A stretch of DNA of 32,000 nucleotides, from the NCBI RefSeq assembly GCF_000400465.1, contig NW_008806291.1, forward strand, positions 165,680 through 197,679, in the 5' to 3' direction. Each line of letters opens with the position of its first letter. Positions within the stretch are counted from its first letter, which is position 1. This document shows positions 5,408 to 32,000 of the stretch, in pieces. A program made the position numbers and the translations under genes. The notes below the pieces were generated by a model. It was given only the letters and a program-made list of their open reading frames with translations. It was not told the origin of the DNA and did not search any database. The DNA is from Wallemia ichthyophaga EXF-994. Taxonomy: Eukaryota > Fungi > Basidiomycota.

Positions 5408-7718
5408 CTAATCGAGGGATATAGCAGGCATTTCCTCATCGCTGGATTCTTGCCCTTCCTTATCCTTATTCATAACTGGCAGCGGATTGCTAAATGACTT
5501 GGTCGACTCAATTGGCGGTGGTCGAGCTGTTGTTATCTTCTCCATCGTCTTGGGTTCATCTTTTGCCACTGCAAAATCAAGCTGTCCATTCGCACTGGCG
5601 GTGCTAGTTGGGTTGTGCTGAGACACGCTCTTTTCTTCCTCTTTTTCTTTTTCATCTTTTTCATCTTGCTCCTCTTGCTCTTCTTTCTCCATGGCTTCAT
5701 CTTGATCCTCATCCTCATCCTCATCCTCATCCTCATCCTCACCTTGCTCACCTTGCTCACCACCGCCAACAACACCCAACGCCAATTTGATATTCTCCAA
5801 TTCCTTCTTCAAATTGACACGCTTATCGTCAATATCAGCGTGAACAACTGGCGGTGGAGCAACGGGATGAATGATAGCGTCAAGCAGCTCACTTGAGCCA
5901 GTAACTTGGACAATCCAGCTCGACATTGGCGAAGTGAGAGCGCGTTTACTCTGAATAACTCCTACGACAGCCTTCCAAACGCGCTGAGACGCAGCTTCAC
6001 TCGGCATCACTCCCCTCCATTCCTGATCTAGCGCCAAGGCTACGACAATTTTCAAACCGAGTGTTTCTAAACTAGGTACGGTGTGTAAGGCCTTCTTGAT
6101 GACTGCATGTGTTGGGATTAGATTGGTGTTAACACTATATCCTACTAAATAAACACTCACACTCAAGAGATGCGAGCAATATCTTCACGTCTACCGCTGA
6201 CATTCTCACACTAGCTGAAAATGCTTCGTCTACTTCAAACTGTGCTCGACTCCGTTTCTTCCCTTTCCCTGACGCTTTCCCTGACGCTTTTGTGTTACTC
6301 CCTCCCACTGCTGTCTGCTTGGCTGGTGCAGCTAAAGCGAGTGAGCCGAGTGCACATTTAGCAATGCGAGTCATATGTGCATTATCGACACTAGACGCTG
6401 CTCCGGTGGCAGTCAGTGAACTTGAGAGCATCAGGAGGGAGTGTTTGATTTGGCTGTGCGTTTTTAGTATGTCAGAATGGATTGATAATGTACTGCTCAC
6501 CCATTCACCTCTGCGCTAGACAGATGGAAAGCAACAGCGTTGAGAATGGTGCTGGTGTGCGGTGCGAGTGAGACGCCCACCAGTGTCGATAACTGGGAGA
6601 GCAGTCCACAGGCAAAGCTGGTCAGCTGCACTGTACTACTAATGCGCAGCACCTCTTCCTCTTTCGAAGAGTTTTCTTTCTATTTCACAGTCAGCAGACT
6701 ACACGCTAGCTGGAATTCGCGCATCACTCACTATAGTAGCCGGTGTGAGGTGGAGAATGCGAGTACACAGACTGACAATATTCCCGACGGGGATACTGAC
6801 AAAGGTGTCGTATTTCGCAGTCAGCGCACTGCATATCGCGTAGAATAACACACCAATACGTCTAGTCAGGAAGGGTGCATCTACTAGTAAATCACCAGTA
6901 ACTGCTCTGATTTTGCCCAGATTGATACTTTCTCCTTTGCTGCTCTTTGCATATGCCCACGTCTCGCCTTGCAGATGGCCGACATCCTCATCGATGCTCG
7001 TCAGCGTGCTCTCTATCAGCTTCTTGAGCGTAGGCGATACATTCGCTTTACCGGCAGCGCGAGCCGAGGAGGAGAAGAGACGAGTGACGGCGTCGACGAG
7101 CTTCTTGTTGGTGGAGTCTGGTGAATGTGCGAGCAACTCCGTCACTACGCCATTGAGGGCGTTCAACTGAGGTCTGAAGCTGCTTGGGTGGGTAATGAGA
7201 TGATCGCTAGCAGCGTGCATAGCGTCTATTTGTACATCACGGCGTTGTTTAACGAGATCGACGAGTCTTTGTGCGTACTTGACCGACAGCGGCTGCGTGA
7301 CAGCTCTGCCGAACTCGGGAAGCCGCGTCGCAGCGGTGAATATGAGCGTGGTAAGGGTGAGAGCGTGCTTGAGCGTCGCCGCCTCCTCGTTCCCCCTGTT
7401 CACAACTGCAATAGCTTTCTCCAGCCACTGCTTGCCGTATTGGCGGATGCAGTCGAGGGAGGACACCCGCGCATTGGCCCAGACCACAGCCAGTTGGAAA
7501 CCTAGCGATCTTTCGAATTGATCGCGGGATTGCTGGAGTGTGTTTATGCGTGTGTTCAGCTGCGTTAGCATTTCGCTGCTCTCATCCGGGTTGAATACAC
7601 TAGCATCCGATTCAAGTAGCTGTAGCGCAGCCAACGCTGGTTTCTCCTCTGGATTGCTCAAGTAATTTCTAAGCACTAGCTTTATCACCCTCGCTTTATT
7701 GCTGCTATTGCTGCTCAT
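5408..7718 (-). CDS. RIX1: Rix1/PELP1-like pre-60S (rixosome) protein, 4 exons, 717 aa
   Basis: Joins three track ORFs through introns 6731-6680, 6500-6454 and 6160-6103 (2154 nt coding). Helical N-terminal region (RINTL, LPEFGRAVTQP), GKGKKRSRAQFEVDE basic motif, acidic tail ending MPAISLD. Confidence 0.75.
5698..5740. repeat. (TCCTCA)n hexamer repeat encoding the Asp-Glu tract of RIX1
   Basis: Tandem tcctca units, read as EDEDEDEDED on the minus strand. Confidence 0.85.
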
Positions 7719-8007
7719 TTGGTGGGTTTTATCAAGAGACAAGTTTCATTCGTGGGGATCTTGCATACAAAATTAGCATCACTGGTTTGATGTGTATTGT
7801 TTATTTAGATTTACTGCTTATTTAATCTTTCTTGGCTGGCAAAGGGTGCAAATTTCCAATCAACCGAGGGGCACACAGACGCACACACACAGAAACACAA
7901 CACACCCACACCATACCCACAGCAACTCCCTCCATGGCTTATCCTAGGGTTGCATTTTTTAATTTAACCATTTTTAGTTTTTGGTTAATTTTTTTTTCAC
8001 CCCGGGC

Positions 8008-8014
8008 TATAAAA
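8008..8014 (+). promoter_or_regulatory. TATA box upstream of U1 snRNA
   Basis: TATAAAA starting 34 nt before the U1 5' end. Confidence 0.65.
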
Positions 8015-8041
8015 GACGTAGGGCTTCCAGCTTGTTTCTTC

Positions 8042-8213
8042 ATACTTACCTTGGCGAGGCTTCTGATCTCACGTACATTGGAAGTCGTGTTGACCGTCTG
8101 GGCATTGCACGGCGACAGTAGCCTACTCAGAAGGGATGCATTGTGTAGACTTCGGTTTACATATTGCCTGAATATTTTGCACGCCTTCTACTCTACTCTG
8201 TAGGGTGGATGGC
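8042..8213 (+). ncRNA. U1 spliceosomal snRNA
   Basis: 5' end ATACTTACCT (5' splice-site recognition arm); closing helix GGCGA(8053)/TTGCC(8164); SL1 stem GGCTTC/GAAGTC; U1A loop ATTGCAC at 8104-8110; SL3 TGTGTAGAC-TTCG-GTTTACATA; Sm-like site AATATTTTG at 8171-8179; 3' hairpin to about 8213. Confidence 0.92.
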
Positions 8214-8336
8214 ACTGTCCTTGTTGTTTTCGCAGCTTTGATTGTGCTATCTGACCTGTTTGAGTGATTATAATAACTATCGATGCATTTGATTAAGTTG
8301 ATGTTGATTAGTGTGTATGTTTGTACAATGACGCCA

Positions 8337-9609
8337 TTAGACCGTGTTGGAAACTTCTAGGCATTTGTCTACTGCCTCTTCTAAATTACCGTGCTCAGCA
8401 TTGAGTATCATTTCGCACACTCCTGGCTCAACGTGAGGGAATATCTGCAGCAGTGTCTCAAGTGACTTGTTGAACTGCTGTCGAGAACGCTCCATCTCCT
8501 CAAGGTATTGCGAATGAGACCGTTCTAATTGAGTGTTTTCACGCCTGGTATCACCAACACTCTCCACCTCAACCCCATTCCCGTTGCGCTTCGGAGAGGT
8601 CGAATTGGTTAGCTTATCAACACCCTCTTCAACCACTTCACCGAGCAGCTTACCTATCTTGCCAATCCCTTGGGTAGTTCTTTGAAACATCTGCCTGGAT
8701 TCGTTTGCTAGGTTGAGTTGAGGTGTTGTGGGTGTCGATTTAATTGGAGAAGGTGGAGGTGTGGATGGTAATTGGGATATAGCTTCTGCGACGCGCCTGA
8801 ACATTTGTGAGCACTTTACTGTACCACTATGACCCCACAAACCTCTCAAACTCCTCTTTATCTATATTCGACAAGGCTTTGTGATCTAAATTGCTGATAA
8901 AAGAAACAGCAGCTGTGATAGTGTAGAAGTAGTAGCCCACTTCACCAGACAACTGCTCGCTATCAGTGAAACGTTGTATATAATCAATATTGCTGATCAA
9001 ATGTTGCGGATTAGATTGTAGAAGCGTGTAGATGAAGAGTGGAAGTAAGCTATCAGCTGAGGTAGTTGCAGGTGAGTTGTTGAGTATGCTAGTGAGTATA
9101 ATTGAAGTGTTCAAGATGACTAATTTCTTATCCTTTGGGCAATGGTATTTGTTTATTGAGTGTAATTGATGTGTAGCAAGTTTGAATGTTTCACCTAAAT
9201 CAAAGTATAGATCGAGGTTTTCAAGGTTGATCCAGTTGAATATTCTTATTCGCTGTTCAAGCACTTGGTCCTTTGCTAGATCATCAAATTTAGGATTAAA
9301 AGTTCGAGGATATAGCTTAATATGTATCAGCTTATCGATGGAATCCAAAGCCAAATCGAGATCATCAAATTGATTGGATTTACGCATTTCTGCAGCGATG
9401 AAAGATAAGAAATCAGAAATCAATTTGACTTGCTGGGTCGATGTGAAATCTCTCTTTTCAAAACCAGATAAGAAGGAGAGCGTGTACTTGTTCACAGATT
9501 CCACTCTATTGTAGACACTTAAAAACCGATTAAACTGATCATCCTCGTCAATGTCAAATAATTTTTCATTTAATTGGTGTTGATTATCCTCTACAATCGC
9601 GGATGTCAT
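8337..9609 (-). CDS. VPS9: Vps9, Rab5/Vps21 GEF with VPS9 domain and C-terminal CUE domain, 2 exons, 408 aa
   Basis: Intron 8842-8797 joins the two track ORFs (EEFERRVAEAI). Motifs CPKDKKLVILN, SADSLLPLFIYTLLQSNP, IDYIQRF, GEVGYY; CUE motif IFPHVEPGVCEMIL..LEEAVDKCL. Confidence 0.92.
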
Positions 9610-12600
9610 GGACTATGAAGGATCAAGAAATCAATTGGGTTATCTGCTTTCTAAAATTTTTAATATTTAATACGAACAACTGGACAACACTATTGCTTCC
9701 TTACAACCATCATCTACAAATTCATTATTATAAATCGACGATCAATAGGGATGACGTTTACAGGCTGCAACTGTCTACTAGGGAGATGGACAGAATACAA
9801 TTTATAAGGCTTCTAAGTAATCCTGAGTATCTCACTAGCATCCACCCAGCCATCTCCAACGCTATCACTCTCAACGTCATCGACTCTCACACAAAGTTGA
9901 TACGCGTCTTTATTTCCTCTGGTTGGACTAAATCTATAAAATACAGTGATATTATTATAACCATCTTTTACAATCAACACTCTGTCATCTCTGTAGCCAC
10001 TTCAATCGATCCTCAATCTGAAGAACCCTATCAATACGCTCAAATTCCTCTTTTAGCGTGGTCTGCGGAGTTTAATCGCCATTCCACCAAGATAAATCAC
10101 TACTGGCAGTGGAATATCAAAAATCACTCAAATACTGGCTCAATCATGTCAAATCTGGTTGATTTAATGGCGAATTCAAGTGATATCCCCCTGTTGAACT
10201 CGTTTGACCATCTCAATATCAATAATTACTCTATTGACAATCAAAGAGATTGCTTATCGTTTCAAGTTAACGTTGAAAATCACTCTGACTCCTCCCCTCA
10301 TCTTTCTTTGGTCGTTTTAGCTGATTTCGCTTGGGATTTACTCACATCCAGTGATTGTAACGCGCAAATCTCAAATCATTCTTCTTTACTACTCATCCAA
10401 ATCCATTTCACTCACTCCACCTCCCTTTCCATAGAAAAAACTACCGGTCCTCCTTCTTCTGTACGATTTAATGGCATAATCAAGCCCATCTCTATCTCCA
10501 ACGATCCTATACTCAATGAGGCCCTCCCAAAATCATCTGCCCACAAGTTCCATGCCAATTCGATCATGAACCAGCTATCCAACTCCAGCAAGCAGGAGGA
10601 ATCGGCCTTGACTGAACATTCCTCACAATCCACTTCCAATTCCTCTTTACGTTCATCCTCACGTACACCCTCCCAAGCTACCGAGATCGCTTCTATCATT
10701 CGTCATAATTACACCTACTTCTCCAGTTTGCTTCAAGAACCAGAGCCAAAGTGGAAGCACGTGAGCGATACCAAGGGTGTCTCTATCACTCAACTCGATA
10801 CTATCGACCCTGCAGTTGTTTTGTATCGTGGTCAAGGTGAGTGTGCTACTGATTACCCTCCTCGCCTCCCTTACACTCCCCACAGCAACATTTATCGGCG
10901 TTAACATTTTTGATATCTTTGCAGTCTTTGAATCGTACGGCTCAAGGGTTTTTTGGGACAAAACGTTCGAGGATGCAACTTTGCTTGAGGATATCAACAA
11001 CGCTTCTTTTCTTTGGTATTTGAAAACTAAGCCAGTCTGGCCAGCTAATGCCAGAGACAATGTCCTAGTAACGACTTCATACAAATCAATGGCTAGCATA
11101 CACTGCTTCGGTTTCACAGCCCACGACTCTTCTCTATTCCCCACAATCCCACCTATCAAGCCAAATCTCATACGATCTCAAACCGACTTGTCAGGTGTAG
11201 CTATTGAGAGTCTATCGCCTACAACGGTCCAGGTGACTGTACTGGAGCAGAGTGATCCAAAGGGATGGCAGAACAAGTCTGGTATTCCCCAAATCCTCAC
11301 TCAACAGATCTCGGGAGTTGGAGAGTTTGCTATTAAGTATGGAGGCCCTCCAATACTGACGGATATCACCAACGCGCGCACACTCATGAGTCACTACGAC
11401 CACGAGAAAGCCAACTACAAGTTGGAATATGAAATGATTCTGCCATTCGACACTCTCGTACCGGTGCAATCAGAAGAGGAGCTGCATCCAAATAGGTCCA
11501 AGGAGCCATTCACTATCACTTGCTTGCTTCGTTGCGACTTGGATAGGTGGGCGAACAGCATTGATATAATTATTGATCCTCCTGCGACTAATGTCGAGTG
11601 CATAAAACGTCATAGACTCAGCGCCCGAGGCGGAGGACTGTGGATTGCCATCAAACACCAAATCGACCCATCTAATGAGCAGTACGATATTATGGACTCG
11701 AAGCTAGCAGTGAATATATTAAGGAGCAAAAAGGATAAAGATCGTGGTAGTGTTTACGTCAACGGAATGAAAGAGACCATAAATAATGAAGAGATGTCTG
11801 AAGAATCTATTGCAAAATTGAAAGCAATGAAAAGACATCCACCAGCTTGTGTGCCTCTCGACACACTTGCTGAGAGGCATCTCGAAGTGAATGACATAGA
11901 TCCAGTTGAAGGTTGGTTGGATTTGGAGAAGAAGGAGGTAGATGTCAAGTTATTGTCATCGTCATCGTCAGTGCCAGCGTCAGCGTCAAATTCAACATCA
12001 GCTTCTACATCAGTCGCACCTATGAATATACCTAACTCGGCATCAGCTGATAAAGAAGTAGCTTCTAGGTACACATCTAAGATGGGCAGTATCCCCGAAG
12101 CGCCTTCTATCAAGGAAGATTCCAGTATACTCTCACAGAATTTTAATCAAGATGCCACTAAGCACAAGGAGCCAATGAGACGCGCACTCGATTCATTGAG
12201 TTGGACAAGAAGAATACATGAGGATCTTAATACTAACACACATACAACTTCGTCAGCCTTAAAGAACACACTTACATCACAAAAGCAGCAATTATATGGA
12301 TCGAGCGTGTCAACAAGTGGCAGTATTGCCAGTAATAACTCCAACACAGATCTACTATCAACGGATGGCTCAAAAAATACCAACTGGAACGTTATATTTG
12401 AAAAGGATGATCTCACAATAAAGAGAAAAATATTCCACGCACTATCGAATGATGTCCCAGTGCAAGTTGGTCAGCGTGTCATTGAAGGGTGGAGTGTTAA
12501 CGAAGTAGCTTCGGCTATACATTCCTCATACATTTCAAAGTCGTTCAAGGATGGGAAGAATTGGGACAATGAGCGAATTGCACACAATGATGTACTTGAG

Positions 12601-19964: not shown

Positions 19965-21026
19965 TCAAGTACAAGTGAGTATAAATGATGTAGCGTTTCC
20001 AGCGTGTAGATGTGTGGCAGTGAAAGGGGTAGCAGTGGGTTTGTGTGTGTCGTTGGTATGGCCTAGGCCGAGGTTGCCGTGTTCATTCCAGCCGAAGGAC
20101 CAGACGGTGTTGTCTGAGGTGGTGAAGAGGGAGTGTTCGCTGCCAACTGCCAGTTGAGTGATGGAGGGGGTTGTGGTAATGAGAAGGGGAGTGTTTGAGG
20201 GAGTGCTGGTGGGTGTGTTGGGACTAGCGCCTGTCCTGCCCACTGACCACAGAGAGTGACCATCGTACACAACAGTACCACGCCAAGTGCACCCGTAGTC
20301 CAAAACACGGGTAAAGGCACCCAAACTGAGCTGTCCGTGTGTGTTACTCCCCCAGCCAATCAAACCGTCTGCTGAGTGGAGGATAGTGTGCTCTCTCCCG
20401 GTCCGCGCACTGAAAATTGGAGTCTGGGTCGAGAGGAGGAGGTGGGGAGTAGAGAGGAAAGGTTTTCCAGAATTAGCGGGGCTGAGTTGGCCTTTTCGAG
20501 AGGCACCCCAGCCAAAGACGTTGTATGTGTTGGTGTGCAAGTGTCTCAGAATGACGATAATGTGCCGGAAGGAGGAATTAGCGTGGATGAGAGCGTGATT
20601 GTGTAAAGGGAGGTTAATGGGACTGTGTGGGTGTGTACTAGCCACATCAGCCACGCCTCTGCATCCAAATCCACTATCACCAACGCTTATAAGCAGCGGA
20701 GGGAGAGTATTTGACTCGAGAAAGAAGAAGGAAGTCGACCAACTGGCTAGAATGCGTGTGGTTTGGTGGTTTGGATATAGGCTACTCAACCAATCGAGTT
20801 TTGTGAGTGTGCTTATAGAGTGCCCAGCTAAGCCAAGCTGATTGCAATCATTTAGGCCAGCGCCGTAGACCCGTCGATTAGACAAGATCAGCGTGTGGTT
20901 TCCGCCGGTGGATATTTGGCAGCTACTTTCAAACGACGATACAAATTTAAATTCTGCAAAATCCTCATCGATTGGGCTGAGCTGGTGATTCGAGTTTGAA
21001 CCGGCGTTGAATAGGAGATATGCCAT
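19965..21026 (-). CDS. ATS1: RCC1-repeat protein Ats1/Kti13, intronless, 353 aa
   Basis: N-terminal LFNAGSNSNHQL, repeats GGNHT, GWGASRKGQL, GREHT, GWGSNTHGQL, GSEHSL, FGWNEHGNLG, CTWRGT. Confidence 0.8.
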   Translation of the reverse strand: MAYLLFNAGSNSNHQLSPIDEDFAEFKFVSSFESSCQISTGGNHTLILSNRRVYGAGLNDCNQLGLAGHSISTLTKLDWLSSLYPNHQTTRILASWSTSFFFLESNTLPPLLISVGDSGFGCRGVADVASTHPHSPINLPLHNHALIHANSSFRHIIVILRHLHTNTYNVFGWGASRKGQLSPANSGKPFLSTPHLLLSTQTPIFSARTGREHTILHSADGLIGWGSNTHGQLSLGAFTRVLDYGCTWRGTVVYDGHSLWSVGRTGASPNTPTSTPSNTPLLITTTPSITQLAVGSEHSLFTTSDNTVWSFGWNEHGNLGLGHTNDTHKPTATPFTATHLHAGNATSFILTCT

Positions 21027-21919
21027 CACGCTTAGAGTTGATTAAGCAGCTTAGAAGTAAATTCAATTGCTCAATTAACCAGGCTGTCGCTAGCCTTAAT
21101 CAAAGTGGCAATGACCTATCCACCGCAGAGACAGCGCTGAAATCAATTTTGAACAGCGACAACGCATCTAAAATAAATAAGGCTATGGGCAAGGGCGAAG
21201 GAAGTGAAGGTTTGATTGGCAGTGTTGTTCTTCACAATGGATTCCCTGTTACTGGCGGTGCACCAGCCTTAAACAGGGCTAGAGGTGGTTTACTTGAACT
21301 ATCCTGTCAATCAGATTTCGTGGGCAGAACGAACGAGTTCAAGAGGCTGGTTGAGGATGTTACTCATTCGTTGTCATTCCTCGTCGACGCGGATGGATTC
21401 ACCGATGTAGACGTCAACGGCTGGTTAGATGCACCTCTGATCAGCTCATCACCCACCTCCACTCCTTCCACTCCCTCAACAGAGTCCATCCATCAAGCAA
21501 TCACAAAGACGATCGCTAGTGTCGGTGAAAATATTACCATCAAGCGTTTCACTGCGTTTAACTTACCCAGTGCTAAATCAGCTAACGCAAATATTCGCTC
21601 ACTAGGCCAATTCACCCATTCCATCCAACCGAACAGCCATTTTAACGAGAAATCACCCGTACAACTCGGTTTATTGGCTGCTTTGGTTGATTTGGAGGTT
21701 AGCGGGGGTGTGAAGGAGGAGAACGTCCACCAAATGTCACGCAAGATCGCTAGACAGTCAGTTGCGATGCCTTGTTCGAGTGTAGATGAGTTGCTTGAGC
21801 AGGAGTTGCTTGGCGGTGTCAATGAAGAGAGTGTGAGGGATTATCTGTTAGATTGGTCCACTCAAAACCAAATCGACTCAACAAATGTTAAAGATTTCAG
21901 AAGGTGGCATGTCTCTTGA
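21020..21919 (+). CDS. TSF1: Mitochondrial-type elongation factor Ts
   Basis: UBA-like N-terminus LIKQLR...AVASL, EGLIG, ELSCQSDFV (variant of E.NCETDFV), SVGENITIKRF, IARQSVAM. Confidence 0.85.
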   Translation: MPSRLELIKQLRSKFNCSINQAVASLNQSGNDLSTAETALKSILNSDNASKINKAMGKGEGSEGLIGSVVLHNGFPVTGGAPALNRARGGLLELSCQSDFVGRTNEFKRLVEDVTHSLSFLVDADGFTDVDVNGWLDAPLISSSPTSTPSTPSTESIHQAITKTIASVGENITIKRFTAFNLPSAKSANANIRSLGQFTHSIQPNSHFNEKSPVQLGLLAALVDLEVSGGVKEENVHQMSRKIARQSVAMPCSSVDELLEQELLGGVNEESVRDYLLDWSTQNQIDSTNVKDFRRWHVS

Positions 21920-21942
21920 TAAATTTTACTTTTTTTTGTAAC

Positions 21943-23143
21943 ATGACGTCATTGAAAGATAACAGGAATTATTTAGTTGGTGTGGTTTTTGTGGGTGTTG
22001 CTAGGTGTGAGTTGGCTACAGTATAATAACACACACACACACGCACAGATTATACTCGTTGCCATTCTCTGGGTCTGTAGCTATGAATTGACTGATGAAA
22101 TGTTCAAACTTGGTTACAACAAGCCTTTCTTGTGAGTTTCCTAGTGCGTTTGAGTCTTTGAACCCTATATAAACGTTTAAACAGCCTCACTTACCTCACT
22201 TCCTCCTCATTCTCCCCCTATTTGATTCCATATGTCTTGAATCGCAAATCCACTAGAAACCCAGTCATGCTCACACCAAACCAAACATTCCAATTAGCTG
22301 TAAAGTTCACTCTCTTTTGGACACTTGCCAACTTTTCCATCAACGCCAGCCTCCAATTCACTTCCGTGGCGAGCTCAACCATCCTCAGCTCAACCTCTGG
22401 TCTATGGACATTTCTTATCGGTGTCCTACTCCGCGTTGAGTCATTCGAATTCACCAAGCTATTCGCCATATTCGCCTCCATTTCCGGTTCGTTTTTGGTT
22501 ACGTTTTCGGATTTTAGCGGGATGCGCGGGGAGCCCGAGGAGTTTGGCGGTATGTCTATTGTGAGTTGGCCTTACAGCATCAGACACCACACTCACACTC
22601 ACACCCACGCAGCTCGGCGACACACTCGCTCTCCTTAGCGCCATCAGCTTCTCCGTCTATATGCTCCTGCTCAAGAAGACAGCTGGGAGCGAGTCGCGGA
22701 TCGATTTCCCTTTGTTCCTCGGCTGTATTGGCGCCATCAGCACTGTGTGTTTGTGGCCCCTCCTCGTCATCCTCGACTACACGCAGGTCGAACCTTTTCA
22801 TCTGCCAGAGACGACCGCATTGGGCAGTATAATACTTGTCAACATGGCTATTTCGTTTAGCTCTGACTATCTTTACTTGCAGGCTATGCTCAAGACTAGC
22901 CCGCTCGTCGCTACCATCGGCATCAGCCTCTGTCTCCCCTTTTCCATTGTAGCCGACTGGTGGCGTGGTCAGCTACACTTGACGACGTGTGGGCTAGTGG
23001 GAAGTGCTCTCGTTCTCGCCTCTTTCGTTGTATTGGGCTATGAAGAGGATGAGGAGGAGCAGTTGCGTGGGCATGGACATGTCTCAGACGAGTCTCAGTC
23101 TTTGTTAGGTGCAGACGCAACCACATACGATTCTACCACTTGA
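21943..23143 (+). CDS. SLC35F5/Thi74-like drug-metabolite (EamA) membrane transporter, 4 exons, 345 aa
   Basis: Introns 21991-22048, 22132-22184, 22561-22612 (1038 nt). ILWVCS, YNKPFFLTY, ANFSINASLQFTSVASSTILSSTS, LGDTLALLSA, LKTSPLVATIGISLCLP. Confidence 0.85.
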
Positions 23144-23432: not shown

Positions 23433-24300
23433 ATGCGTTTCACATCAGCAACAGTCGCGGCAGTTTCAGCACTCATGGTAAGCAGTGCAGCTATGCCTGG
23501 AGCCCATGAACAAGGACACGGCCAGCAAATGGGCCAGCACCATCACTTTGGTCACGACGAGCATGGTCCACATGGACTAGAGGGGGATTTCGACATAGGA
23601 CATGGACATGGACATGGACATGAGCACGAACACGACCACCACGTGAGTAGTCAATGATGATTACTGAGTACCTTCTAACACATGCTAGAAACGCAAGACT
23701 GGAAAATTTGCAAATATGTTAGGCATCCCTGCTCAAGATGGTATTGGAGCTAACCGTGGCGGTAGGAATGGCGGAGGACATCGCAGTGGTGGTCGCAACA
23801 ACTACAATTACGACAAGAGACATTTGCACGAGGAGGATCACGATCAGTTCCATGGACACGAGCACGGTCATAAGAGAGGCGGAAAGGGTGAGCACGGTGA
23901 GCACGGTGAGCACGATCACCACGATCACCATGAACATCATGAGCACGGTCCTAGAAATATCGGTAAGGGCCTTGGTGAACACGATCACGATCACCACGAT
24001 CATCACGATAAACACCACGGTGAGCCACACCACCAAAAGAGAGGCGAGCATGGTAAACACCACGAGCACCATGACATGCACCATGGCAAGCCACACCACA
24101 AGAGGGGCGAAGAACACAATGAGCACCACCACGACAAAGAGGGCAAGAAAGAGGGCAAGAAAGGCAAGATGACACAGCACGAATTTGACAGACGCGCTGG
24201 ACGCGATCACCATGATCACCACTCAGGCGCTATGAGTATGCTCACAAGCCCATTCGTTCTCGTCGGTTCTGCAGTGATTGCATTGTTCAACTTTAACTAA
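23433..24300 (+). CDS. His-rich secreted, probably GPI-anchored, Lys-Arg-segmented protein A; 2 exons, 273 aa
   Basis: Signal peptide MRFTSATVAAVSALMVSSAA; intron 23643-23688; about 62 His of 273 by hand count; five KR sites plus RR; C-terminal SGA followed by hydrophobic tail MSMLTSPFVLVGSAVIALFNFN. Confidence 0.88.
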
Positions 24301-24736
24301 AAGAATAAGGCTAAAGTCTTAATGGCTTATGTGGAGTTGCCTGGCTAGCTAACTAGTTAACAAGCTAATTAAATATCTTATTTATTTTCTCATCGACAGA
24401 TATAATGTACATATCTCCTTAATAATTATTCATTTTATCTACTATAATTTTAGTTGTGTTTGTTTTTGTGTTGTGTTTGTTTTTCAATTCTTTGATTTCA
24501 GACATTCATTAATACACTGATATATGGATACAGGGATACATAATTACACAAATACACGGATACAAACCTAACGCCTGTCTTTTACTTTAAATTATACTAG
24601 CCATGTTGAAATTTTGCGATTGGTTCGAAAACACGCCAAAAAGACAGACAGATCTAACTTAAATGTTTAAGTTATCACATTCTTCAATCTTTACTTTGCC
24701 AAGAGGAGAATTGACCAATAAGAGACAGGCATAGCG

Positions 24737-24861
24737 ATGACAAGAATGCCGAGTGAGGAATGTCATGCCATGACAGGCCAAGACATATGTGGGGAGACGC
24801 GAGAATGGGTATGACAGAGCACGGACTTGAGAATGCGAGTGGGAATGAGATTACTATAAAA
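24737..24861 (+). promoter_or_regulatory. Promoter of His-rich gene B: five RGAATG sites, four ATGACA/TGTCAT sites and TATA box
   Basis: RGAATG at 24743, 24757, 24802, 24830, 24842; ATGACA at 24737, 24770, 24811 and TGTCAT at 24761; TATAAAA 24855. Confidence 0.6.
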
Positions 24862-24922
24862 GCCCACTGTCCTTAACTCTCTAACACAACAACAACACAG
24901 TTATCTATCACTCCAAGCTAAA

Positions 24923-25803
24923 ATGAAATTATCAGTCGCATCTATCGCATTCGTCGCAGCTGTCGCATCTACTTCATACGCTGCACCTCAACCAGGACAC
25001 GGCCATGAACATGGAATAGAGCACGGACATGGGCATGGACATGCAGGTGAACACGGTCACTTTGTGAGTTTGTCTTAGTATAGACAAGTGTACCATGCTA
25101 AATTGTTCCATAGGCTCGCTTCGAAGGTCTTCACCCACACGGATACCACAAAGAGCATCACGACGAGCACCACAAGAGAGGCGAGCATGGCAAGCATGGC
25201 AAGCACGGTGAACATCACGATGAGCACCATGGACACAACAAACTCGGTGAGCACCACAAGAGAGGCGACCACCGTGAGCACCACGATATGCAGCACCACG
25301 AACCAAACCACCACGAGCCACATCACGTAAGAGGCGAGCATGGTGAGCACCACGAGCACCATGACATGCACCATGGCAAGCCACACCACAAGAGAGGCGA
25401 TGAACACCACGGACATGTCGACTTGGACCACCACGAACGCCCTCACGAGCACCACCACAGAGACTTGAAAGACGAGAAGGACCACGACCACCACCACGGC
25501 CACGGACACCACGACGACAAGCAGAAGAGCGAGATGGACACTGCACAGAAGCTGAACAACCTGGACAGCACTGCGAACAAAAACGACAACGAGGATGCTA
25601 AGAACGATACCAACCAGAATGCTAATAAGGCAACAACTGACACCAACAAGGCTAAAGCAACTGGCACGACTGAGGATACCAAGAAACAGCAAGCACTGGA
25701 TAGCTTGAACAAGGATGATGACAAATCAGGCGCAATGGCTAGCCTTCTCTCGCCATTAGCACTGATTGTGAGCACTGCGATTACCATCATGCAGTGGAAC
25801 TAA
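24923..25803 (+). CDS. His-rich secreted, probably GPI-anchored, Lys-Arg-segmented protein B (paralog of A); 2 exons, 276 aa
   Basis: Signal peptide MKLSVASIAFVAAVASTSYA; intron 25064-25113; about 60 His of 276; HH-KR-G(E/D) three times; His-free N/D/T/K/A stalk; C-terminal SGA followed by MASLLSPLALIVSTAITIMQWN. Confidence 0.88.
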
Positions 25804-31239: not shown

Positions 31240-32000
31240 ATGTCTACGCTTTTTACTGGGTATGGGGGATGTACGGGTAAGCAGGATAATCAAGATAAGC
31301 AGGAAGTGCAATTCATCCCTACGCACACCACCAACTCATCGATCACCACCCCCACCCGCTCGGCATTCGAGCATGACGACATGGAAGAACGCGGCACACT
31401 TGACACACAACCTATTATTGAAACACCCTCCGCACACACGCTCTCCCGCGTAGCCAGCAAGATACGCAACAAATGCACACCACTCTCTCACCAACGCTCC
31501 TCGTTCAGCGGTGGGAACAACAGCAACGGTAGTGGAGACAGTCACAAGGCGTATACACAGGCACAATCGAGCATGAGCACCGGTGGTATCGGTCTCATGA
31601 ACCGCTCAACCTCCTCTCTACCCTCACCACCACCACCCACTTGGCAGAAATTGCGGGGTGATTCTCCGAAACAGTCACAGTCACAGTCACAATCATGTTC
31701 ACGGTCACTGCCGCGTCCACAATCACATGTTTCACTCTACTCTGGCCACTCTAGCTACTCGCATTACTCAGGTATGAAAAATTTAGCAGCTGCATCGCAC
31801 GAGATAGTAAACACGCCGAGTATCCATAACTCTGCACAATCCGATCACTCAAAGCACTCAACTCACCCTGCTCTCCCCGGCCTGGCTGAGGCTATTGAGC
31901 CACACTGCCAGAACACGCAGGGTGCTCTACGGGCAGTGCCTGCGGTGCGCAGTCGGTGTGGTGCCTGGAGCGATGTCTATAGGTGTAAGGATGAGGATGG
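31240..32000 (+). CDS. 5' part of a gene with a Ser/His/Pro-rich disordered N-terminus, possibly a protein kinase
   Basis: Open frame from ATG 31240 (MSTLFTGYGG...) to the window end. The last residues (RCGAWSDVYRCKDED) loosely resemble kinase subdomain I, so the kinase call is tentative. Confidence 0.6.
   Translation, partial: MSTLFTGYGGCTGKQDNQDKQEVQFIPTHTTNSSITTPTRSAFEHDDMEERGTLDTQPIIETPSAHTLSRVASKIRNKCTPLSHQRSSFSGGNNSNGSGDSHKAYTQAQSSMSTGGIGLMNRSTSSLPSPPPPTWQKLRGDSPKQSQSQSQSCSRSLPRPQSHVSLYSGHSSYSHYSGMKNLAAASHEIVNTPSIHNSAQSDHSKHSTHPALPGLAEAIEPHCQNTQGALRAVPAVRSRCGAWSDVYRCKDED

Follow-up and report, generated by a model that had tools for sequence, protein, structure and literature searches.

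Two tandem genes for histidine-rich proteins

The DNA analysed here is a 32-kb window of contig KE007241.1 of the fungus Wallemia ichthyophaga EXF-994 (all positions are counted within this window, and all features described are on the + strand unless stated otherwise). It contains two paralogous genes arranged in tandem, head to tail, namely gene 1 (23433..24300) and gene 2 (24923..25803). The precursor encoded by gene 1 has 273 aa with 22.7% His and 16.5% Gly, and that encoded by gene 2 has 276 aa with 21.7% His, which agrees with the 22-23% His given in an earlier reading made from the letters of the DNA (hereafter the sequence-only reading). The mature parts of both proteins contain about 26% His and 11-19% Gly, with a grand average of hydropathy (GRAVY) of -2.1 to -2.2. 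Both proteins lack Cys and Trp, Ser and Thr together amount to 2.1% in gene 1 and 6.0% in gene 2, and a single N-glycosylation sequon was found in the two proteins taken together. The spliced gene 1 protein is identical to EOQ99497.1/J056_001820, which carries the public label hypothetical protein, and the product of gene 2 matches exactly GME4057_g, a published model supported by the transcriptome (Zajc et al. 2013, Table S6; PMC3849046).

Each gene has one phase-0 intron after a first exon rich in GH and EH, just as had been proposed. In gene 1 the first exon (23433..23642) encodes a signal peptide and a His/Gly/Glu-rich N-terminal peptide of 51 aa, the intron (23643..23688; 46 nt) reads GTGAGT...TTCTAAC...CTAG, and the second exon (23689..24300, stop codon included) contains the His-rich modules at 23878..24105. 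In gene 2 the first exon (24923..25063) encodes a signal peptide and the start of a conserved N-terminal peptide; it is followed by an intron of 50 nt (25064..25113), inserted between GHF and ARFEG, and by a second exon (25114..25803, stop codon included) in which a low-His stalk rich in N, D, K and T occupies 25528..25725. Splicing is required since both introns contain in-frame stops.

Relatives and selection

The comparison set comprises W. ichthyophaga and two contigs, Logan contig L003, reached via the neighbouring SET-MYND exon, and ENA metagenome contig L004, reached via one exon-1 open reading frame (ORF) from an exhaustive phmmer search. Both contigs are syntenic with the window, having SET-MYND and STT3 downstream of the pair, and since their STT3 is 88.6% (L003) and 82.6% (L004) identical to that of the window they are considered to be other Wallemia-like lineages. 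Gene 2 has a complete orthologue on each of them, with the intron at the same site, while the gene 1 orthologues are visible as C-terminal ends only, at the contig edge. As orthologues of both genes are present on both contigs, the tandem duplication is older than the split of these lineages. Outside the protein termini the alignment of such low-complexity sequences is uncertain.

The pair is real and under purifying selection. The ratio of non-synonymous to synonymous change (dN/dS) for gene 2 as a whole is 0.15-0.17 among the three lineages, and its most constrained part is the N-terminal peptide of about 45 aa that extends from the signal peptide cleavage site to the first Lys-Arg (KR) dipeptide. 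This peptide is 84-88% identical in all pairs, with a proportion of synonymous differences (pS) of 0.53-0.76 and a dN/dS of about 0.03-0.10 where it can be computed, the synonymous sites being saturated. Its motif is APQPGHGH..EHGHGH..EHGHFARFEGLHPHG..HH, and it closes in HHKR. This first HHKR of gene 2 is invariant in the three lineages although its Arg codon is AGA in two of them and CGT in the third.

Among W. ichthyophaga strains (L002, GCA_004918415.1, positions 6001-8371, and proteins P0002-P0004) 3-aa units have been gained or lost in frame: GEH in gene 1 and, in gene 2, a single additional Gly/Lys/His unit within the run of GKH. A few substitutions also occur, one of them Gly to Cys. 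None of these strains has lost a KR.

Signals at the two ends of the proteins

Rule-based inspection finds in both proteins the N-terminal signal peptide that the sequence-only reading had described and that also belongs to the definition of the Kex2-processed repeat proteins (KEPs) of fungi. It covers about residues 1-19 in gene 1 (23433..23489) and residues 1-20 in gene 2 (24923..24982), and it consists of a basic n-region (MR/MK), a hydrophobic core of 12-15 residues and small residues at -3 and -1, with predicted cleavage after VSSA and before A in gene 1 and between TSYA and APQP in gene 2. The signal peptide is conserved across the three lineages.

At the other end, the two proteins terminate in SGAMSMLTSPFVLVGSAVIALFNFN and SGAMASLLSPLALIVSTAITIMQWN, respectively. 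The gene 1 signal of the glycosylphosphatidylinositol (GPI) type (24223..24297) is composed of S249-G-A (24223..24231), the spacer MSMLTSP and a hydrophobic tail of 15 aa, FVLVGSAVIALFNFN; that of gene 2 (25726..25800) is composed of S252-G-A, the spacer MASLLSP and the tail LALIVSTAITIMQWN. In all six sequences (two paralogues in each of three lineages) S-G-A is placed exactly 25 residues from the C-terminus, providing the small residues expected at omega, omega+1 and omega+2. The spacer of seven residues, always ending in Ser-Pro, and the hydrophobic tail of 15 residues are also of the same length in the six, and no K or R follows the tail in any of them. The gene 1 lineage, the C-terminus of which is conserved in L003 and L004, strictly matches the De Groot fungal GPI pattern, and gene 2 likewise has the polar spacer and terminal hydrophobic tail free of basic residues if Q at -3, the third residue from the end, is tolerated. 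The invariant position of S-G-A, in paralogues that otherwise barely align, supports a GPI-type tail, so that the SGA plus hydrophobic C-terminus noted earlier is borne out by inspection as well as by strong conservation.

KR sites and modules

In gene 1 five KR dipeptides are encoded, at 23689-94, 23815-20, 23872-77, 24037-42 and 24100-05, in the contexts HHKRK, YDKRH, GHKRGG, HHQKRGE and HHKRGE. The intron is placed exactly before the first of these, so that exon 1 ends at a KR boundary. Gene 2 has three, at 25174-79 (the site conserved in position), 25258-63 and 25390-95, in the contexts HHKRGE, HHKRGD and HHKRGD, with a VR at 25327-32. HH comes before most KR sites, and in W. ichthyophaga G-E/D usually comes next; the modules bounded by HH-KR-G(E/D) that had been proposed are present, as a degenerate family. 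The number of KR exceeds that expected from shuffles of the mature region in gene 1 (5 versus 1.0, P about 0.001), in gene 2 (3 versus 0.75, P about 0.03) and in one orthologue (2 versus 0.34, P about 0.04). This enrichment is not independent evidence because the sites sit in degenerate tandem modules of 66-69 nt. These modules are 60-70% identical in DNA sequence (families D2 and D5) and each ends in AAGAGAGGCGA. Gene 2 contains three of them, of the form G[ED]H...HH[KV]R (25180..25395), one closing in VR, gene 1 contains two, and the relatives have fewer. The KEP definition, which asks for at least three similar repeats between dibasic sites that cover at least 15% of the protein, would be fitted only loosely by such modules.

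Cutting at KR or RR divides the proteins into at least four fragments, as in KEPs, gene 1 having five KR and one RR and gene 2 three KR and hence four fragments. In silico the KR fragments are 17-53 aa long, close to the 17-55 aa first reported, and contain 31-47% His; GEHGKHHEHHDMHHGKPHH is one of them. At pH 7 the His-rich fragments have calculated net charges between -5.2 and +1.2, and the predicted charge per segment passes from about -5 at pH 7 to about +12 at pH 5. The exception is a fragment of gene 1 (23695..23814) with KR on both sides, a 40-aa peptide (KTGKFANMLGIPAQDG...NNYNYD) which is not His-rich but rich in Gly, Asn and Arg, is basic (+4) and is unlike every other module.

A BLASTP comparison with composition adjustment aligns the paralogues over 11 residues only; their paralogy therefore rests on the shared architecture, the C-terminal signal and the DNA modules. 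A 78-nt module, R-GEHGKHHEHHDMHHGKPHH-KR-GEEH, occurs at 24040..24117 in gene 1 and at 25330..25407 in gene 2; the two copies share 95% identity, which suggests a recent gene conversion or module transfer between the tandem copies. Across lineages the conservation of KR spacing anticipated by the sequence-only reading holds for the first HHKR of gene 2, which is fixed, and does not extend to the other sites, which turn over with the modules. The two extra HHKRG sites of gene 2 in W. ichthyophaga lie in a lineage-specific module expansion. The last KR of gene 1, in HHKR-(G)EEH, is kept in L003, the one relative in which it is visible. Module turnover between species is a behaviour that has been reported for KEPs (PMC6339444).

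Searches for homologues

The claim that no known family could be recognised is upheld by Pfam, by the PDB sequences and by 1.84 billion protein representatives. In Pfam no match was obtained for gene 1, and gene 2 gave sub-threshold matches driven by composition only; the matches to DUF4407, Trypanosoma Mucin and Strabismus, located on the low-complexity stalk and tail, were rejected as far below the gathering scores. The folded Pfam domain of the Pra1/Zps1/Aspf2 type is absent from both proteins in the same search. The PDB sequences gave no match at E <= 10. Exhaustive phmmer against the 1.84 billion representatives returned two matches only, the exon-1 ORFs P0007 and P0008. Full-length gene 2 had no match in an index of 5.8 billion proteins, among 8000 candidates sharing words with it, and we suspect that words of poly-His filled this candidate list. 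When the non-His segments of the two proteins were joined into a chimeric query, a word-indexed protein search found gene 1 itself and nothing else, and of 600 matches in JGI metagenome contigs to a pattern derived from the alignment none was confirmed. Moreover, full-text searches found no literature on His-rich proteins of Wallemia or on the locus tag. As far as these searches reached, the family is probably restricted to Wallemia.

On the Logan and ENA contigs prokaryote-style gene callers report antisense Val-rich ORFs or exon 1 only, and this explains why the true proteins are missing from large collections. The antisense ORFs are long because CAC reads GTG on the opposite strand; an example in L003 is 11497-12021 (+). 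Since the callers miss the spliced protein, and poly-His words are suspected to saturate word-indexed searches, the near-invisibility of this family in protein collections means that lineage-restricted proteins of such a kind are probably under-counted.

Disorder, expression and regulatory sequence

A single-sequence AlphaFold2 model has a mean pLDDT of 51 and a pTM of 0.14, and shows no secondary structure between residues 17 and 189. From this model and from the composition the His-rich part looks intrinsically disordered, and in such a chain the KR sites should be accessible.

In published RNA-seq (PMC3849046) gene 2 has 3.9 reads per kilobase per million (RPKM) at 10% NaCl and 1.7 at 30% NaCl, corresponding to 63 and 28 reads, and gene 1 is not among the differentially expressed genes listed there. 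So low an RPKM suggests that gene 2 is induced conditionally and not constitutive. Since expression is low, and lower still at high salt, a bulk structural or salt-protective role is disfavoured.

Two blocks of the gene 2 promoter, TGCCAAG (24697-703) and ATTGACCAATAAGA (24710-23, a CCAAT box), form a footprint (24697..24723) that is invariant in the three lineages, in a promoter otherwise 66% identical between lineages. We take GCCAAG to be the core of PacC/Rim101 sites and CCAAT to be a site for the CCAAT-binding complex (CBC) with HapX; the footprint is a lead towards possible PacC/Rim101-type and CCAAT-type control of gene 2. The upstream region of gene 2 further contains TATAAAAG at 24855, and GCCAAG is absent from the gene 1 promoter. 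Copies of (G)GAATG, which resemble TEA/AbaA-type sites, occur at 24757, 24801, 24829 and 24842. In gene 1 it is the 3' untranslated region (UTR; 24377..24413) that contains blocks invariant in the three lineages, CTTATTTATT (24377-86) and ATGTACATA (24405-13). The latter includes UGUACAUA, a motif of the PUF/Pumilio type (UGUANAUA), and this hints at a possible post-transcriptional control of gene 1 through a PUF-type element.

Genomic neighbourhood

The pair is flanked by an EamA/SLC35F gene on one side and by SET-MYND and STT3 on the other, and no other His-rich coding region was found in the window. The ORF at 31601..31774 was considered as a further His-rich gene and rejected, since the frame is short and nothing else supports it. 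The long minus-strand ORFs at 23719..24222 and 25075..25692 were also rejected, as antisense artefacts of CAC and GTG. On the EamA/SLC35F side, the ORF at 21020..21919 is a complete EF-Ts ORF with its own stop (Pfam PF00889, E = 2e-10). The public model GME4055_g (21185..23143, 545 aa), the counterpart of which is annotated at 600 aa in another strain, fuses EF-Ts sequence to the exons of the EamA/SLC35F transporter and may be a chimeric gene model.

Interpretation

The explanation that we favour, tentatively and with a confidence that stays somewhat short of an even chance, is that gene 1 and gene 2 encode Wallemia-restricted, GPI-anchored, disordered metal-binding surface proteins from which one or more N-terminal peptides are released by Kex2 or a yapsin. 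We infer the GPI attachment, the proteolysis, the metal binding and the physiological role from features of the sequence. The signal peptide would carry each protein into the endoplasmic reticulum (ER), the GPI anchor would be transferred to the Ser of S-G-A (Ser249 in gene 1, Ser252 in gene 2), and the dense His/Asp/Glu arrays would bind Zn, Cu or Ni at the plasma membrane or the wall surface. The functional core would be the conserved N-terminal peptide of about 45 aa that ends in the invariant HHKR. This site, and the lineage-specific HHKR sites after it, would be cut by Kex2 in the Golgi or by a yapsin at the surface, giving His-rich peptides that would end in HH after trimming by Kex1, while the stalk stub would stay anchored. 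Unequal recombination and gene conversion may alter how many KR-bounded modules (21-28 aa) are present. W. ichthyophaga is listed among the species rich in KEPs (Le Marquer et al., PMC6339444), so that a processing route of the KEP type is in use in this fungus.

Several points weigh against this explanation. The three lineages form a small set, and the signal peptide and GPI calls come from rule-based inspection together with conservation. The gene 2 lineage fails the strict De Groot pattern, solely through the Q at -3, and both proteins (S+T 2-6%) lack the Ser/Thr-rich O-glycosylated stalk, a typical but non-obligatory trait of fungal GPI wall proteins. In gene 2 a single KR keeps its position across the lineages, and the second KR of L003 and L004 aligns with HR in W. 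ichthyophaga. The residue after KR varies (G, D, Q or E), and Kex2 favours an aliphatic P4 where these sites have His. No gene for metal homeostasis, including ZIP transporters, was found adjacent to the pair, and the expression values cover two NaCl concentrations. The main weakness concerns the membrane-proximal KR of the relatives, since if it is cut a nearly His-free stub is left and the purpose of the anchor becomes obscure.

Some of these points would be expected if the proteins were never cut. They could form an intact GPI-anchored coat, with KR as an uncut by-product of the repeats. Such a coat might act as a sink for metals or buffer them, or it might be a polyelectrolyte switched by pH, with a negative charge above pH 7 and a strong positive charge around pH 5; we regard it as unlikely in either form, yet as the most likely of the rival explanations. 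Most KR sites are indeed lineage-specific, with one of them replaced by HR in W. ichthyophaga, and they move with duplicated modules, which makes their enrichment non-independent. Moreover the GPI signal is the most rigidly kept feature across the paralogues, which is sensible if the His-rich part stays attached, and the charge per segment does swing with pH over the range given above. Nevertheless, the first HHKR has remained invariant while its Arg codon changed synonymously, KR exceeds the shuffle expectation in all three proteins, and in gene 1 the first exon stops right at a KR boundary. In addition, fungal Kex2 normally cuts exposed KR in disordered secretory proteins, for which Ywp1 is a precedent (PMC6258133).

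A reading that goes further than the favoured one, and that we hold to be doubtful, sees the proteins as polyproteins tethered by GPI from which ribosomal peptide metallophores are made, a system specific to the fungal lineage that is the most halophilic. Kex2 and Kex1 would then free the conserved 45-aa GH/EH peptide along with a variable set of HH-terminated peptides of 19-26 aa. In brine the freed peptides would pick up Zn, Cu or Ni, after which the anchored stub or a transporter would capture them again.

It is improbable that these are type I membrane proteins whose C-terminal hydrophobic segment serves as a transmembrane anchor instead of a GPI signal. The Kyte-Doolittle hydropathy in a 15-residue window exceeds 1.2-2.0 across the last 18-19 residues, and both the departure of gene 2 from the strict GPI pattern and the missing Ser/Thr-rich region would suit such an anchor. 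However, the hydrophobic run has only about 15 residues and is followed by just one to three residues, none of them basic, and the S-G-A with its Pro-containing spacer of seven residues is invariant in paralogues that can hardly be aligned elsewhere.

We give equally little credit to an extracellular protectant of the hydrophilin or dehydrin kind, and to metal-crosslinked wall material. By analogy with the His-rich dehydrins of plants, and with the His/Gly-rich proteins that harden invertebrate jaws with Zn, the Gly/His-rich chains might hold water or might harden the thick wall of this xerophilic and halophilic fungus via His-metal bridges. The Gly content and GRAVY of the proteins lie within the compositional definition of hydrophilins, the family is seen in Wallemia-like lineages only, and binding of metals by His-rich dehydrins is described (Hara et al. 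2005, as cited in PMC5293756). A bulk protectant would however be expected to be abundant and induced by salt, in contrast to the RPKM of 1.7-3.9 of gene 2 and its decrease at 30% NaCl, and no Pfam dehydrin or late embryogenesis abundant (LEA) match was found.

The least probable alternative, to which we attach very little weight, is that the KR-released peptides are antimicrobial, as the sequence-only reading had suggested by comparison with histatins, or serve in signalling, and not in metal handling: the KEP-like architecture in a KEP-rich species, the basic non-His peptide of 40 aa in gene 1 and the existence of Gly/His-rich antifungal peptides in plants and insects speak for it, but the His-rich fragments have charges of -5 to +1 at pH 7, brine screens the charge on which such killing depends, and a pure pheromone or toxin precursor is not expected to carry a GPI tail. 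According to PMC3849046, W. ichthyophaga needs 10% NaCl or more.

If the favoured explanation of anchored and cleaved metal-binding proteins is true, it would provide a handle on the way in which an obligate halophile acquires trace metals, or buffers them, where the brine contains 2-5 M chloride, and if the metallophore reading is true it would represent a fungal route of metal acquisition distinct from siderophores and from zincophores of the Pra1 type. Should the model fail, the two genes would still encode surface proteins that are orphans, yet well conserved, in a fungus that is a model extremophile.

Comparison with known systems

In architecture the pair resembles KEPs such as the yeast alpha-factor precursor and Rep1 of Ustilago maydis (surveyed by Le Marquer 2019, PMC6339444, and Umemura 2020, PMC7329392), which likewise have a signal peptide, several KR bounding short modules, a module number that varies with the species and no globular domain. 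However, the repeats of KEPs are nearly identical whereas the Wallemia modules are degenerate, one of them ending in VR, and the X-Ala/X-Pro signature of Ste13 is absent after KR in the Wallemia proteins. Their His-richness is also unlike the described KEP types, the types that contain HH (G-3 and G-8) being tied to DUF3328 clusters for RiPPs, peptides that are ribosomally synthesised and then modified post-translationally. Moreover they bear a GPI-type tail. As the pipeline of the published KEP survey drops membrane proteins flagged by TMHMM, this tail could have excluded them from the survey if it was flagged.

With regard to the tail, the sequence-only reading had considered the combination with Kex2 sites unusual. 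This was overstated, because Ywp1 of Candida albicans is anchored in the wall and has a propeptide that Kex2 cleaves (PMC6258133), and shedding by yapsins at basic residues is known for GPI proteins such as Gas1 and Utr2 (PMC4353680). These proteins likewise combine a signal peptide, a GPI signal and basic cleavage sites, with an N-terminal fragment made after ER entry. Nevertheless, they have no sequence similarity to the Wallemia pair, and Ywp1 has one propeptide junction and a large O-glycosylated core, in contrast to the three to five KR, 2-6% Ser/Thr, lack of Cys and approximately 26% His found here.

Among the proteins known to handle metals outside the cell, Pra1 of C. albicans, Aspf2 of Aspergillus fumigatus, Zps1 of yeast and the His-rich ectodomain of ZrfC are likewise extracellular and His-dependent, metal capture by the Wallemia proteins being presumed. 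Genes of the Pra1/Aspf2/Zps1 type are induced by alkaline pH and Zn limitation via PacC/Rim101 and Zap1/ZafA, and the invariant GCCAAG in the gene 2 promoter is a further likeness to these zincophores. The Pra1 family is however folded, contains Cys and is recognised by Pfam, whereas the Wallemia proteins look disordered, have no Pfam match and have no adjacent gene for a ZIP transporter. In composition the pair resembles Hpn of Helicobacter, the His-rich region of vertebrate histidine-rich glycoprotein, human histatins, the shepherin precursor of plants and His-rich dehydrins, which also combine high His with Gly, Asp or Glu and have HH/HxH arrays, a charge that depends on pH and expected binding of Zn, Ni and Cu; shepherins and histatins are in addition cut from larger precursors. 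None of these proteins is homologous to the Wallemia pair or has a GPI signal, and histatins are cationic at neutral pH, unlike the His-rich Wallemia peptides.

By analogy the pair may be seen as a blend of known kinds, that is of a KEP-like precursor, a GPI surface protein and a disordered metal-binding protein rich in His. In the literature searched no precedent was found for a GPI-tailed protein with several His-rich modules bounded by KR, and if the favoured explanation is true the Wallemia proteins would be the first case found of a His-rich precursor that is segmented by Kex2 at multiple sites and carried on a GPI anchor.

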